A DNA stretch of 64,000 nt from Tubulanus polymorphus. Its lineage: Eukaryota > Animalia > Nemertea. A model generated the notes under the pieces. The model saw nothing but the letters and a program-made list of their open reading frames with translations. It did no database searches and was not told the DNA's origin. This document shows positions 1 to 8,503 of this stretch, piece by piece. The first letter of the stretch is position 1. The number at the start of each line of letters is the position of its first letter. The position numbers and the translations under genes are program-made. The DNA lies in the NCBI RefSeq assembly GCF_964204645.1, contig NC_134032.1, positions 11,644,275-11,708,274 of the forward strand, read 5' to 3'.

Positions 1-120
1 CACATTCGCGTGCACACGGGCGAAAAGCCTCACCGATGTCAGGTGTGCGGGGAGGGCTTCGCCGAGCCGGCTAATTACAATCGGCACGTACGTAGAAAAC
101 ATCCGCCATGGGGCAGTTAA
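1..120 (+). CDS. C2H2 zinc-finger terminal exon 0 (5' part outside window)
   Basis: Frame 1 reads [39 protein letters not shown]: end of finger 1, TGEKP linker, finger 2, TAA at 118-120. Confidence 0.9.
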
Positions 121-635
121 AATATCGGTGAGGAGGGATGCACAGTACTGTTCTCCATACGCTGTCTGCAGTTTTTTAAGAAATCTTAATTCAATTCTTA
201 TGTTTATGATATGTCGTGGCTGCTGAAGTAGCGAGGCTTTCGATCCCTCGGAAAAAATACTGAAACTTAAGCTTAATTTAAGTGTCATTTTGCACATTAG
301 CTCAATATATTTCAAAGCATTATCAGCATTGATAGAATATTGACATCCACGCCGGACGGGGCAGCAGATATTTCATAAGGGGTGGCTGTGAAAATGAAAG
401 GGCTGGCCGACCTTCTAAAACCTGGAAAACATAGGAAAGGTTTGTGGAATTGTCAGGGGCAGTTGAAAACGTCAATGAATGCAGATTCCATCAGGGTATA
501 TGGGAACAGGATATGAAAGGGTTAAAATTCAATAAGCATGCTATTTGAGACACAATCTGTAAATGGTCTATTATATTAATGCAGAATTTAAGAACACTCT
601 TGATATTTTGTCAACTGTCAGTTATTTGTTGTTCG

Positions 636-858
636 AGGCTGAAAAATGTGATACCTTGTTTCTCCTAATCGGCTGGGCCACTTTTCCATAGTGCAATAAA
701 ATTTGTTATCAGTTCATTTCAATAGCTGCCAGGTGTTATGGTTAGATTGGTCATGATTCTTAAAAAGTTATGTACAGGATATATATGCAGCCAGCCGGGT
801 CAACTTTTAAGCTCGGCAGAAATCATGAGAAACAAGGTATCAATTTTGTTATCCTTAT
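636..858. mobile_element. MITE family A (TIR core GATACCTTGTTTCTC); other copies about 3655-3874 and 26034-26257
   Basis: Inverted ends gataccttgtttctc / gagaaacaaggtatc; shared interior (gcaataaaa...tagctg...atggtta) in three copies. Confidence 0.75.
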
Positions 859-1229
859 ATACGTATTATGAATACGTTTATGTTTATCTTAAAGAACAAA
901 GTATAAATGAATAAAGTTATATTTAATAATCATAGAAATTATCGTTGTTGATTATTATTCTTTTTAATGCTCCGTAGACGGATTTAACGACGCAAAATGT
1001 TGTTTTTCATCGTAAATTCATGAATTTCAAGAGAACCACGGGATTGTGTGCGGGACTGGCCTGACCGGTGAGAACCATCAAGGGACTGACTGTATGACTA
1101 ATGCCTCGTAAACCAATTGAACACTGAAATATTTGCCTCAATTCTTGTTGCAACAATATTATCCCAGTTACCATGACTACACATGTAATGGACGAATTGT
1201 AATTGAGTTTTCCCATTACAATTTTGTAG

Positions 1230-1579
1230 GTGAAATCAAGTCCGGTGGCTCCACCTATTGGTCATCGTCTACATACGCGAATCGAGGAGGCTTTCGGTCG
1301 CCGCGTCAGAGTAACAGGGAATATCGCCCCGGCCAGGGGGGTGGTGGCGCTAGCGCAGCCGGAGCGGACGATCTGAGACGACATCAGTGCGAAATTTGCG
1401 ATAAACGATTCGCGTCGGCTTCGTTGTTGAAGATTCATCATCGCGTTCACACCGGCGAAAAACCGTACGTCTGCGCCGTCTGCCAGAAACGATTCACTCA
1501 AATCGGCAGCTTAAACGTTCACTTGAGAAAAGTGCACAACATACTGTACTGCGTGTCTGCGGACGGAGCTCGGAAATAG
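1230..1579 (+). CDS. Alternative 3' exon 1: linker + 2 C2H2 fingers
   Basis: Acceptor attttgtag|G at 1229/1230, phase 1; [50 protein letters not shown]; no Met anywhere in the exon. Confidence 0.88.
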
Positions 1580-1682
1580 GAACTTAACATCTCAATCAGA
1601 CGGATCCCAGAAATAGGAACTTAATGTCTCAATCAGACAGAATCTGGAAGTATGAACTTTCCATCTCTATCAGACAGAAACC
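1572..1682. repeat. Approximately 37-bp tandem repeat x3 directly after the exon 1 stop
   Basis: gaaataggaacttaacatctcaatcagacgg / gaaataggaacttaatgtctcaatcagacag / gaagtatgaactttccatctctatcagacag. Confidence 0.8.
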
Positions 1683-2037
1683 TGTGATAGGAGGTCGCTG
1701 CCCGACTAGCAGCTATCTCCCCATCTAGTCAACAAACCCTTTCAGAAATGATACTCTCTACAGGTCATCGGACATGAGACCCCCTACCAGTATTAATGCG
1801 CCCCAACTGGTCGGATGAACGTAGTGCACGTGATAGGAATAATATTCGAAGTGGAGTCGAAGCGCTGTTTCCAATCTGATGAGAATTTAAAAATTGACAT
1901 GACCATATGTTAGAAAATATCTGAATGAAATGGACTCATGATTTAGGAGATCGCATGACTTCAAATTGATATTCAAATTTATCAAATATTTGAAATAATT
2001 TCGAAATGTTATCCCAGTTTCCCATTGCATTTTGCAG

Positions 2038-5608: not shown

Positions 5609-6030
5609 GTGTTGATGATGAAAACTTTGTATTGTCTCCAACGACAACACCGGCAATGGCAGACGGACATATGATACCAAACCTGTCCCAAATCGTCGTT
5701 AACCGGTCCAATTACAACCCGGCAGTTTGGATGAAGGATTATTCCGTTCCGAAGCGGTCATTTACATCAGCGCTGCAAGTACGACCTCCATGTGGCAGTA
5801 TAAGAACGGAAGAACCCATTGCGACTGCATCTACACCTCATTCGAAGGTCGTTACATTGCATAAATGTCTCGTTTGCGCGAAGTGTTTCCAGACAAAATC
5901 TAAGTATAAACGTCACTCCATGATACACACCGGCGAACAACCGTTTCAATGTCAGTTCTGCCAACGATTGTTCAATCAGAGATCATCGCTCATGCGTCAC
6001 ATGACCAGTATCCACGGTTGTGTGGAATAG
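5609..6030 (+). CDS. Alternative 3' exon 5: linker + 2 C2H2 fingers
   Basis: Acceptor tattgcag|G, phase 1; CLVCAKCFQTKSKYKRHSMIHTGEQPFQCQFCQRLFNQRSSLMRHMTSIH. Confidence 0.88.
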
Positions 6031-6546
6031 AGAGATTTGTCTGCTAGCTGAGCGTGGCTGGATATACAAACGGCATATACAGCATGAAAATCCGTTTTCA
6101 CATTTATTAGATCATTGGTGGCGTGGAATGAAAGTCCGTCTGCTCATGTTGCATTGTCTGCTCGTGTTTTGAAATATGCGTCGTAGCTCGGAATACGAAG
6201 TTGTGGTTTAAAACCACATTCAGTGACAGTTTACGTTTATTTCAGTCTATAGAACCGGGTCCAAATATTTAGGATTATCCCATTGTTACAGCGTCTAAAA
6301 AATCCCGACTGTGGTTTGGTTCGCGCTCTCATTATTGGTTTTTCTTTTGAACTTCGCGGGTTTATTGGAATATTCTAATATCGACTATTCTATACCTATT
6401 CATTGAAAACTGTCTACGCTGGTGTTAGTCCGTCTGCTGATAATCATCACACATACGTGTACACATGATGAAAATCCGTCAGCACACGTCGACATTTCGT
6501 ATTAACATATTTCACTAAGTTATTTTAAACCGTAATTATTTTCCAG

Positions 6547-6938
6547 GTGGCGTCCCCGACAATGATGACCTGGTATTTAACGCAATGGATATCCAAGGAC
6601 AGTTCGTAATGTACGCTGACCCGAATCTGGAAATATCTGCGAGCGGCCGTGGTGGTCACCAACGAAGGAAATCCTCGTTGCCGGGTGCTGGAAAACGTCG
6701 TCGTGCGGGAGTCACGGGAAACAGTCCGCTCGCCGCAGCTGGTGCCAGTTCGATCGATATGATGGTGAAAGGAATTTGCCCGATTTGTAAAAAAGATTTC
6801 GGTTTTCGCTCGGCTCTGGAGGTACACATGCGGGTTCACACCGGCGACAACCCGTTCTCCTGTGAAGTGTGCGGTCGCTCGTTCAATCAGAAGAGTTCGT
6901 TGAAACGACATAAAAGGAACATCCATCATATGAATTAG
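6547..6938 (+). CDS. Alternative 3' exon 6: linker + 2 C2H2 fingers (paralog of exon 4)
   Basis: Acceptor ttttccag|G, phase 1; CPICKKDFGFRSALEVHMRVHTGDNPFSCEVCGRSFNQKSSLKRHKRNIH. Confidence 0.88.
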
Positions 6939-7255
6939 AAGCAGGCGCCAATCTGTATTTATAATGAAGCCACTAGATGGCGACGTGGTGGTCTACAGAA
7001 CCCTGAACCCTGTGGCAAAGCATTTTCATCCGGTTCAGTTGATCTGCGTACTGTGGATTTTTTTACAGAAAGCAGAAATTCATGTCAACTCAACTGAATA
7101 TGTTTAGAAGATTCTGTTATAACGATGATACCTGATAGCGAAAATGTTTTAGAGTTAGCAAAGTTGTTTTGGGTCGGCGGTGTTGAAGAGTTTCTAGCTG
7201 AAATCTCAATTTCCTGAAAATATAATAAACTGTTTTATGTGTCGAATTATTGCAG

Positions 7256-7680
7256 GTGTTGATGTTGATGAAAACGTTGTATTGTTTCCGACGACAACAT
7301 CGGCAGTGGCAGACGGACAGATGATACCGAACCAGTCTGAAATCTCCGTTAACCAGTTCGCTTACAACCCTGCCTTTTGGCTGAAGGATTATTCCGTTCC
7401 GAAACGGTCATCCACATTGTTGCAACAAGAACGACCTCCGGGTGGCGGCGTTAGAACAGAAGAACGCATTGCAGCACCATCTAAACCTCGGTCGAAGGTT
7501 GTTACGTTGCATAAGTGTCTCGTTTGCGCGAAGTGTTTTCAGACGAAATCTTCGTATAAACGTCACTCAATGATACACACAGGCGAACAACCGTTTCAAT
7601 GTCAATTCTGCCAACGATTATTCAACCAGAGATCGTCGCTCATGCGTCACATGACCAGTATCCACGGTTGCGTGGAATAG
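7256..7680 (+). CDS. Alternative 3' exon 7: linker + 2 C2H2 fingers (paralog of exon 5)
   Basis: Acceptor tattgcag|G, phase 1; fingers identical to exon 5 except QTKSSY versus QTKSKY. Confidence 0.88.
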
Positions 7681-8255
7681 AGATCGATGATATTCTGAAG
7701 GTACTCGATTTTTTGTTCGGATACTAGAGAAATTGAAATGAAACTATCGCGACAAGTTGCGAGAAATTTCCGATCCCACCATCGGAAGAAGTTTACTTCA
7801 ATTCTTTCCTGCATTTAGAAACTGAAATCAAGGGCAAACTGGGATACAAAACTAGGACGTAGGACACTGACCATGGAAGATCTATCTAGGGAAGATACAC
7901 TTAAGAATTGTGTAAATCGAGTCTTGAAGATCCGTCTGCTAGCTACGCGGCTGAATATACTAATGGTCATGCAGTTTAAGAATCCATTTTCAGATTTTCT
8001 ATATATCGGAAGGTATTTGTGCGGTATTAAAGTCAGTCTGCTTGCGTTGCGTCGTCTGCCGATGTTGTGAAATATGCGTGGTAGTTCAGAATATACATAG
8101 TGCTGGATTTAATCGGTTCTGTGACAGGAACACCCAGTCTATGATAACGTTAGGTGGCCCATGTTTAGGATTATCTACGAAAACCAGGCCCTGGTTTGGT
8201 TGGCACTCGTTTGTACAATTGTTACTAACTTTCATGACGCAATGATATTTTTCAG

Positions 8256-8503
8256 GCTTGTTCATTCATCCGACTCCTCAGTGGGATCAAGGGAATATCG
8301 GTAGCCACCAGGGGGCGCACGTGTGTCAGATCTGCGGCAAACAATTCCAGAATTCAACGTTGGTAAAACGTCACCAGGTCGTGCACACTGGTGAACGACC
8401 TTATCATTGTTTGATCTGTCAGAAAAGTTACTCGTTGAAACACAATTTATCGCGACATATGAAAATGGTTCATAAACTGGCTACTTATAGCTTCATGAAT
8501 TGA
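8256..8503 (+). CDS. Alternative 3' exon 8 (last of array): short linker + 2 C2H2 fingers
   Basis: Acceptor tttttcag|G, phase 1; [50 protein letters not shown]; no Met before the fingers; followed by an AT-rich region with several AATAAA (about 8703, 9120, 9411, 9545). Confidence 0.87.

Follow-up and report, generated by a model that had tools for sequence, protein, structure and literature searches.

To our knowledge, the swapping of terminal zinc-finger exons has so far been tied to arthropod BTB genes: lola, fru, br, ttk and mod(mdg4). In the BTB-ZF proteins of insects the second finger often has H-x4-H spacing and is followed by a short tail. C2H2 fingers are present in 17 of the 20 isoforms of lola (PMC11426971). 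In mod(mdg4) the cassettes code mainly for FLYWCH domains; they have independent promoters, and trans-splicing is the only way in which they are joined (PMC13490949, PMC11426971), while TTK-type BTB domains have been reported from arthropods only (PMC11426971).

Here we describe a locus in the nemertean Tubulanus polymorphus that has a lola-like architecture and is not a member of the lola or mod(mdg4) family. The window, by which we mean the whole stretch of 64,000 nucleotides analysed, probably contains the last 9 of 12 mutually exclusive 3′-terminal exons (henceforth cassettes) of one gene. As in lola, one constant 5′ part is combined with one of many 3′ exons, each a C2H2 pair with its own stop: in Tubulanus twelve phase-1 acceptors lie behind one phase-1 donor. 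In contrast to lola, the constant part comprises a 49-aa domain without database relatives and a disordered linker, there is no BTB domain, and about 15 tandem or inverted genes share the design. The host, as anticipated, is a non-insect invertebrate; it is a nemertean and not an arthropod, unlike the hosts of lola and the TTK-type genes. Like mod(mdg4), in which more than 30 alternative 3′ exons (some on the opposite strand) use common exons, the Tubulanus cluster has an opposite-strand arm; this arm, however, has its own inverted constant exons, and the cassettes are C2H2 pairs. No FLYWCH domain was found in the cassette-containing models, in which Pfam finds C2H2 families only. H-x4-H spacing is seen in second fingers of the cassettes. 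With the KRAB-ZNF clusters of mammals and the ZAD-ZNF clusters of insects the locus shares a set of lineage-specific tandem genes that pair rapidly diverging C2H2 fingers with a small, conserved domain at the N-terminus, but those genes have a single finger array each, whereas most Tubulanus units have several alternative terminal finger exons. Our literature search found no account of the locus, nor of lola-like loci in Spiralia.

The original prediction, made from the window's sequence, called for a constant exon with a phase-1 GT donor further upstream. Such an exon is present: exon B, ~4.2 kb upstream of the window, ends G^GTAGGT (^ marks the exon boundary). Additional cassettes were also found upstream, bringing the total for the gene to 12, of which the window holds the last 9. 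Features of the gene are given below, where 'rel' denotes window coordinates extended leftward (genome position on contig C8 = 11644274 + rel).

Leader exon, non-coding: donor after rel -6694; upstream of exon A
Exon A: ATG at rel -5659, donor after rel -5512; codes for the 49-aa N-terminal domain
Exon B: rel -5416 to -4229; low-complexity linker of ~395 aa, RGG- and Q-rich; phase-1 donor
Twelve cassette acceptors: rel -2733, -1660, -1077, -220, 1230, 2038, 4085, 4810, 5609, 6547, 7256, 8256
Cassette 4 of 12, 3′ part: 1 to 120, + strand; acceptor 220 bases before the window; second finger 37-102; stop ends at 120
Cassette 5: 1230 to 1579, + strand; acceptor ttttgtag^GTG, phase 1; 115 aa; fingers 1388-1450 and 1472-1537; own stop (1579)
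Cassette 6: 2038 to 2402, + strand; acceptor ttttgcag^GTG; 120 aa; fingers 2199-2261 and 2283-2348; own stop (2402)
Cassette 7: 4085 to 4485, + strand; acceptor cttccag^GTG; 132 aa; fingers 4324-4386 and 4408-4473; own stop (4485)
Cassette 8: 4810 to 5207, + strand; acceptor ttttccag^GTG; 131 aa; fingers 5043-5105 and 5127-5192; own stop (5207)
Cassette 9: 5609 to 6030, + strand; acceptor attattgcag^GTG; 139 aa; fingers 5866-5928 and 5950-6015; own stop (6030)
Cassette 10: 6547 to 6938, + strand; acceptor ttttccag^GTG; 129 aa; fingers 6777-6839 and 6861-6929; own stop (6938)
Cassette 11: 7256 to 7680, + strand; acceptor attattgcag^GTG; 140 aa; fingers 7516-7578 and 7600-7665; own stop (7680)
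Cassette 12, the last: 8256 to 8503, + strand; acceptor atttttcag^GCT; 81 aa; fingers 8324-8386 and 8408-8473; own stop (8503)

A regular-expression scan of the window in six frames returned 17 C2H2 fingers on the + strand between 37 and 8473 (eight pairs and one finger at the left edge); the remainder of the window gave a single, chance-looking match on the - strand. The cassettes proved to be as originally described. Each of the eight acceptors from 1230 to 8256 consists of a pyrimidine tract followed by AG^G, and all eight complete cassettes are in phase 1, with an open frame of 81-140 aa when the exon begins at codon position 2. Every one encodes a linker, exactly two C2H2 fingers and a private stop; Met is absent ahead of the fingers in cassettes 1230 and 8256, and a ninth cassette straddles the left edge, starting 220 bases before the window and ending at 120. 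Four sequence lineages were likewise recovered among the complete cassettes: 1230/2038, 4085/4810/6547, 5609/7256 and 8256. With an automatic acceptor scorer another AG tied on score with 5609, and at 8256 another AG came out ahead (16 to 12.5); at both positions the predicted phase-1 site is still among the scorer's alternatives. On the 3′ side of cassette 12 are AATAAA/ATTAAA signals at 8703, 8799 and 9120, and no further fingers were found in the window. The next gene is PABP-like and starts near 11.5 kb.

Exons A and B stand directly upstream of the 12 cassettes, and tblastn finds no copy of either between cassettes. All 17 copies of exon B in the surrounding cluster (see below) end ...TC[A/T]G^GTAGG, that is, in phase 1, while the phase-1 acceptors have the consensus TTCT.aTGgCT.TTTGCAG^GT over 89 sites, a conserved 20-nt intron end. 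The match in phase between these acceptors and the exon-B donor supports donor-to-cassette joining. Such joining would create a Gly codon in every case: G^GT for 11 of the 12 cassettes and G^GC for the one at 8256. The shortest stop-to-next-acceptor gaps measure 266-324 bases in this gene and about 74 bases in another unit, and thus leave no space for private coding 5′ exons.

At the RNA level we drew on two runs, X1 and X3, which were taken as RNA-like from their coverage pattern and consist of contigs, not reads. Depth in X1 is 0 in intron bins and 1800 in the exon-B bin. One X1 contig begins at L032:4198, at a 'CAG' common to the end of exon B and the end of the intron before the left-edge cassette (acceptor rel -220), and depth steps from 20 to 83 at this point; a junction of exon B to that cassette is indicated. 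In X3 (a 2014 run) the end of a paralogous exon B runs straight into the start of a cassette, in a 26-letter string that the genome does not contain. Over cassette 1230 the X1 contig (L032:5737-6000, plus a further 924 letters) opens 86 bases inside the exon and not at the acceptor, and no junctions for the eight complete cassettes from 1230 to 8256 were seen among the contig joints listed for X1, X3 and other runs. X1 coverage is low over several cassettes. AATAAA/ATTAAA signals occur within 700 bases behind 7 of the 12 cassettes, although 3′ ends are not something that contigs can show.

The cassettes are under purifying selection. Ratios of dN/dS between paralogous cassettes range from 0.24 to 0.59: 0.25 for 1230 versus 2038, 0.24-0.26 for 4085 versus its paralogues 4810 and 6547, and 0.28 for 5609 versus 7256. 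In all 12 cassettes of the gene the frame is open and the fingers are intact. Over 372 fingers, variability at helix positions -1, +2, +3 and +6 is among the highest. The 12 cassettes differ in the combinations found there, and the predicted base-contacting residues vary from cassette to cassette.

This gene forms the final unit of a cluster that spans ~260 kb and is arranged on two inverted arms. In total the cluster contains about 15 leader/A/B units, 83 intact-looking cassettes and 321 fingers. Two units have extra copies of exon B, and nearly all have cassettes of their own: the number of intact-looking cassettes per unit ranges from 1 to about 30 (two units have none), and cassettes reach 27 fingers. 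A conserved leader exon with a GT donor was found for each unit, and several units show a private leader upstream of exon A; the inverted arm is equipped with inverted constant exons of its own. The cluster also includes some fragments with premature stops or a single finger. Of 113 best-scoring acceptors cluster-wide, 90 are in phase 1 (binomial p = 7e-24 against an expectation of one third), but as paralogues the cassettes have largely inherited this phase, and the 90 acceptors are not independent observations. A single giant gene, with about 110 cassettes and one constant region between the inverted arms, was considered and is ruled out both by tblastn, which places about 15 exon-A/B copies along the two arms, and by the private leader exons upstream of exon A in several units. 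The original reading of one gene with alternative terminal exons stands for the array in the window, which has a shared donor upstream, and fails for the cluster, which consists of about 15 tandem or inverted paralogous genes.

Exon A encodes a 49-aa helical-hairpin domain that, in the libraries searched, is found only in proteins of Tubulanus polymorphus, one of them a homeodomain protein. It may serve as a protein-interaction module. A prediction of the homodimer (residues 1-60) scored 0.00, which counts neither for nor against. No match to the domain was obtained in a sequence profile search of PDB, nothing below E = 5 with Foldseek against PDB, and no usable match in the ESM Atlas. Word-index searches with exon B and with the N-terminus of P0011 matched only Tubulanus polymorphus proteins, and residues 1-110 of P0001, compared with 1.84 billion representatives, gave no homologue of the constant part outside this species; other nemerteans may not be in these libraries, so absence from them does not follow. 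The genome also contains at least four dispersed loci with exon-A paralogues.

Exons A and B, scanned against Pfam for two units, yielded nothing significant. A BTB domain in the constant part is ruled out, as there is no PF00651 match near the locus and no Pfam match in exons A and B; searching the whole genome with PF00651 placed the nearest BTB of this contig at C8:722646, with none within 10 Mb. KRAB, SCAN and ZAD are likewise absent, the first 100 aa of 11 family members having no Pfam match. Because its constant part is without BTB, ZAD or other Pfam domain, the locus is an analogue of lola and mod(mdg4) and not a relative.

We propose that in each transcript the single exon-B donor would be joined to one cassette acceptor, with the cassette contributing a variable linker, two C2H2 fingers, a stop codon and, presumably, a 3′ end of its own. 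In this manner up to 12 proteins differing only in DNA-binding specificity could arise from one promoter and one N-terminal module. We infer that the cassettes are mutually exclusive, that polyadenylation is cassette-specific and that the cassettes bind DNA. The public annotation implies something else. It had been expected to split the locus into small ZNF genes; instead P0004, the only public protein model of this gene, chains eight cassettes into one protein of 1,194 aa, as if they were internal exons of one long poly-zinc-finger mRNA. P0004 does map to exon A, exon B and eight cassettes in order, it shares the acceptors 1230, 2038, 4810 and 7256, and its first cassette junction is the predicted GT-AG pair. 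However, every cassette contains an in-frame stop 2-17 codons past its last finger, and only one of the eight cassette-to-cassette junctions in P0004 can be GT-AG, at the cost of a finger's last histidine. Two others would start within the stop codon (AG..AG), four can be solved only by non-consensus pairs (for example AC..TT, AC..AG and GT..TT), and one has no exact solution. With cassette junctions that are mostly not GT-AG, the model looks like an annotation artefact; serial joining is largely refuted by the splice-site analysis and we regard it as barely credible. The public model P0002 joins exon B to an 8-finger cassette exactly at the predicted acceptor, skipping two earlier cassettes.

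Very improbable, too, is that the cassettes are independent small zinc-finger genes or decaying pseudo-exons in tandem, their phase merely inherited. Inheritance of phase is expected in paralogues, and both the interrupted or single-finger fragments of the cluster and the low X1 coverage would agree with this reading, but Met is missing from two cassettes, a private 5′ exon is recognisable for none, no exon A/B copy separates the cassettes of a unit, all 12 cassettes of the gene have open frames and intact fingers, and dN/dS is well under 1. Trans-splicing in the style of mod(mdg4) would have cassettes, or groups of them, transcribed from their own promoters and joined in trans to a separate leader/A/B transcript, which, given the common phase of all donors and acceptors, could come from any of the ~15 units. 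The near identity of the 17 donors and the likeness of the acceptors in phase and 20-nt intron end are compatible with this, several cassettes have no nearby polyadenylation signal, and trans-splicing is reported for Drosophila lola and mod(mdg4) (PMC11426971). Against it, the cassettes are in cis to their own constant exons, which they follow directly and in the same orientation; and since the inverted arm has constant exons of its own, the layout does not require opposite-strand trans-splicing. We consider it improbable. A broader proposal, which we hold to be unlikely, is that the whole ~260-kb cluster forms one combinatorial system, in which ~15 phase-1 donors, nearly identical to one another, face at least 83 phase-1 acceptors that have a conserved 3′-splice-site motif in common. 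Read-through or trans-splicing would then join any N-terminal module to cassettes of other units, the inverted arm included, with the nemertean-restricted exon-A domain a new oligomerisation module in the role that BTB has in insects and the cluster an independent, larger re-invention of lola/mod(mdg4) in Spiralia.

Joining of one exon-B donor to one of 12 cassettes, the reading that we favor, bears on how the locus is annotated: through serial chaining, the public models are systematically wrong, with protein length inflated and isoform diversity hidden. It also places a lola-type architecture in a nemertean, built around an unrelated N-terminal domain for which the searched databases contain no relatives. 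Should transcript data bear this out, the locus would represent convergent evolution of a transcription-factor diversification strategy, would define a new family of transcription-factor-associated domains (present on a homeodomain protein too) and would provide a second, independent system for how one donor picks among dozens of acceptors.

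A scan of the six frames of the window for the pattern C-x2-4-C-x12-H-x3-5-H returned 17 C2H2 fingers, all on the + strand (37–8473): eight pairs and a single finger at the left edge. The remaining 55 kb contained one match, on the − strand and chance-looking, and no fingers were found in the window 3′ of 8503. The original prediction of eight phase-matched, two-finger cassettes (candidate alternative 3′-terminal exons, each with its own stop) held as written when frames, stops and acceptors were re-read. With the exon start at codon position 2 every frame is open, encodes 81–140 aa and carries exactly two fingers; at each of the eight acceptors AG|G comes after a pyrimidine tract, and the cassettes at 1230 and 8256 have no Met ahead of the fingers. 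The stretch from the left-edge cassette to cassette 1230 contains two short interspersed repeats (189–400 and 636–858), which show 78–85% identity to at least 40 other sites across many contigs, with an inverted copy also in the window (C8:11704483-11704704, ∼60209–60430).

The analysis was extended to the 280 kb 5′ of the window (rel denotes window coordinates extended leftwards, C8 position = 11644274 + rel; the genome comprises 268 Mb in 77 contigs). C2H2 cassettes form two arms: one on the + strand from rel -142957 to +8503, the other inverted, on the − strand, from rel -251909 to -156215. Together they hold 116 stop-to-stop frames of 1–27 fingers each. The 13-kb gap between the arms contains a large open frame and, upstream of it, a short one, each in two inverted copies (91% identity). 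In the + copy the short frame, exon A, opens with ATG and specifies 49 aa up to a phase-1 end, AAAG|GTTCGT. The large frame, exon B, has a cag|GT acceptor at its start; its ∼397 aa abound in RGG, Q, S and acidic stretches, and its 3′ end, ...TCTG|GTAGGT, is a phase-1 donor. Exon B, with its G|GTAGGT, is the upstream constant exon with a phase-1 GT donor that had been foreseen, and cassettes continue upstream of the window (in all, 12 in the gene that owns the window's cassettes and 83 intact-looking ones across the cluster).

Searches with exons A and B (tblastn) recovered 15 exon-A copies and 17 exon-B 3′ ends along both arms, two units having extra exon-B copies; all exon-B copies end ...TC[A/T]G|GTAGG. 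Upstream, exon A is flanked by in-frame stops and a conserved ttttcag acceptor. In several units a conserved block ∼0.6–2.8 kb further upstream ends CTCGTAATCG|GTACGT; we read this block as a putative private non-coding leader exon. Because exon-A and exon-B copies are spread over both arms, with the leader block upstream, the locus comprises some 15 clustered genes, each having a leader exon plus exons A and B. Of the 15 units, 13 have between 1 and 30 intact-looking alternative finger exons and two have none (321 fingers in all across the intact-looking cassettes); the donor at rel -146119 has 30 intact cassettes behind it. The leader block (e.g., L004:3100-3306, in fetched DNA) contains a GGCG[A/C]CATCT motif, which we take to resemble a YY1 site, and a perfect TGACGTCA palindrome lies right upstream of the exon-A ATG in two units, among them the gene that reaches into the window.

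Features of the window's gene and exon-A copies of the cluster
after rel -6694, + strand: leader exon donor (conserved block)
rel -5659 (ATG) to -5512, + strand: exon A
rel -5416 to -4229, + strand: exon B, ending ...TTCAG|GTAGGT
rel -2733, -1660, -1077, -220, 1230, 2038, 4085, 4810, 5609, 6547, 7256, 8256, + strand: acceptors of the 12 cassettes
1579, 2402, 4485, 5207, 6030, 6938, 7680, 8503, + strand: private stops of the eight complete window cassettes (frame reading)
C8:11.41-11.64 Mb: 15 exon-A copies, e.g., L018:2269-2415 and L004:4341-4487 (fetched DNA)

Could each cassette instead have its own beginning, or could the cassettes be joined in series? Between the 12 cassettes tblastn found nothing exon-A-like or exon-B-like, and private coding 5′ exons would have no room, since gaps from stop to next acceptor shrink to 266–324 bases. 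Serial joining is what one public model proposes. P0004 (1,194 aa), the model of this gene, links A with B, and B with the rel -1077 cassette, through the predicted GT-AG sites, and then chains seven further cassettes. Of its eight cassette-to-cassette junctions, one could be GT-AG, at the cost of a finger's last histidine, two would begin within a stop codon, and the remainder have no consensus solution; we take the chaining to be a probable annotation artefact. Automated annotation had been expected to split the locus into small ZNF genes; it fused the cassettes instead. Another model, P0002 (610 aa, LOC141909526), has the terminal-exon arrangement: in the unit at rel -32.6k it skips two earlier cassettes and splices exon A and exon B to an 8-finger cassette; the junction ...SG|VGD matches the predicted acceptor and phase exactly. 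Across the cluster 90 of 113 best-scoring acceptors share one phase (p = 7e-24 against one third), with the phase-1 consensus TTCT.aTGgCT.TTTGCAG|GT (n = 89). As the cassettes are paralogues, this common phase by itself mostly reflects descent.

Sequencing runs were examined as Logan contigs over 6,000 bases of fetched DNA (L032, rel -4420 to +1579) that include the exon-B donor and five cassettes. One run (X2) has an even depth of ∼30 across all bins and so looks like DNA. Another (X1) reaches a depth of 1800 on exon B, falls to 0 in the bins of the next intron and is patchy elsewhere, a coverage pattern that looks like RNA. An X1 contig starts at L032:4198, where depth rises from 20 to 83; the bases at 4198–4200 are CAG, common to the end of exon B (...TTCAG) and the end of the intron before the left-edge cassette, and this position must be a de Bruijn branch point if spliced and unspliced RNA are both present. 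In a third run (X3, from 2014, 19 Mb) exonic bins alone are covered, and in one contig a paralogous exon-B end continues directly as GTGTCCGA, with which the cassette of that unit starts; the 26 letters across the junction do not occur in the genome. Among the contig joints listed, in contigs that drop rare forms, none leads to the cassettes at 1230–8256. RNA support for the joining of exon B to cassettes is partial.

The layout varies among units. The unit of P0009 (rel -20161 to -14477, in L005/L004) has three tandem exon-B copies, ending at rel -18820, -17154 and -15708, followed by a single 6-finger cassette; a public isoform model links two of the copies serially. That of P0008 (827 aa, rel -12635 to -7973) has exons A and B and no zinc-finger cassette, and the model's last three exons (rel -9597 to -7973) have no Pfam match. 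This ending may be a non-finger alternative C-terminus, like those of finger-less lola isoforms.

Several other features lie within or beyond the array. A very high-copy repeat follows this gene's first cassette (L032:2100-2330, ∼2.1–2.3 kb 5′ of the window), with many variant joints and a summed contig depth of ∼22,000–25,000 against ∼30 in the flanks in DNA-like runs. The next gene, on the + strand from near 11.5 kb (11534–13800), is poly(A)-binding protein-like: by eye, RNA-recognition motifs of the kind typical for that protein can be read in three open frames. Farther along are a possible seven-transmembrane receptor, an intron-less 319-aa frame (28241–29200, − strand) that has several hydrophobic segments, adjoined by a long (TATA)-type microsatellite read as a YIYI repeat (29610–29990), and three putative large exons of 250 aa (33413–34165, − strand), 336 aa, Ser- and Lys-rich (43960–44970, − strand), and 351 aa with Kelch-like repeats (47995–49050, + strand).

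Protein identity among units is 92–100% for exon A and 43–91% for exon B. At the DNA level, in 14 units (a truncated 15th copy was left out), exon A averages 96.5% identity versus about 67% in its flanks (150 bases upstream and 100 bases of the following intron). Codon differences among units are about equally synonymous (206) and non-synonymous (238). This pattern suggests that gene conversion, or a constraint at the RNA level, acts on exon A alone.

Distant exon-A copies, 32–72% identical, head other genes on several chromosomes (one 72% copy is at C8:10796979); among the products are proteins that end in two fingers and a single homeodomain protein, P0014. This last protein (534 aa, encoded on another contig, 21.6 Mb long) combines a homeodomain (PF00046, E = 8e-20) with an N-terminal exon-A-type domain, so the domain is not bound to zinc fingers; it would seem to be a transcription-factor-specific N-terminal domain. 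AlphaFold2, given an 11-sequence alignment, predicted a short beta-hairpin and two helices (residues 13–33 and 36–59), with pLDDT 84–91 across residues 11–50 and the rest disordered. Exons A and B have no Pfam match; Foldseek against the PDB, a PDB profile search and the ESM Atlas returned no relatives of the N-terminal domain, and every sequence relative found in database protein searches is a T. polymorphus protein. By analogy with BTB, ZAD and SCAN, the domain may self-associate.

Paralogous cassettes show dN/dS of 0.24–0.59 at dS of 0.36–1.6, and therefore purifying selection on their coding sequence. Over 372 fingers the scaffold Phe is kept, variability is among the highest at helix positions -1, +2, +3 and +6, and this gene's 12 cassettes have differing four-residue contact signatures. 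The variable positions and the differing signatures agree with diversified DNA-binding specificities across the set.

C2H2 fingers occur in 17 of 20 lola isoforms (PMC11426971), and mod(mdg4) produces over 30 isoforms (PMC11426971; PMC13490949). The Tubulanus locus resembles lola in joining a constant N-terminus to one of many C2H2-pair terminal exons, as read here from gene layout. It belongs to neither the lola nor the mod(mdg4) family: it lacks BTB (a PF00651 genome search found none within 10 Mb) and FLYWCH, and its host is not an arthropod. The non-insect invertebrate of the original prediction is the palaeonemertean ribbon worm Tubulanus polymorphus. What stands of the proposed lola/mod(mdg4)-like gene is the alternative terminal exons and shared phase-1 donor; what does not is a BTB-type kinship and the single gene, there being many. 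Trans-splicing is not demanded by the layout, because constant exons are also present on the opposite-strand arm itself. If transcript data confirm it, the locus would be of high interest for research on transcription-factor diversification and alternative splicing.
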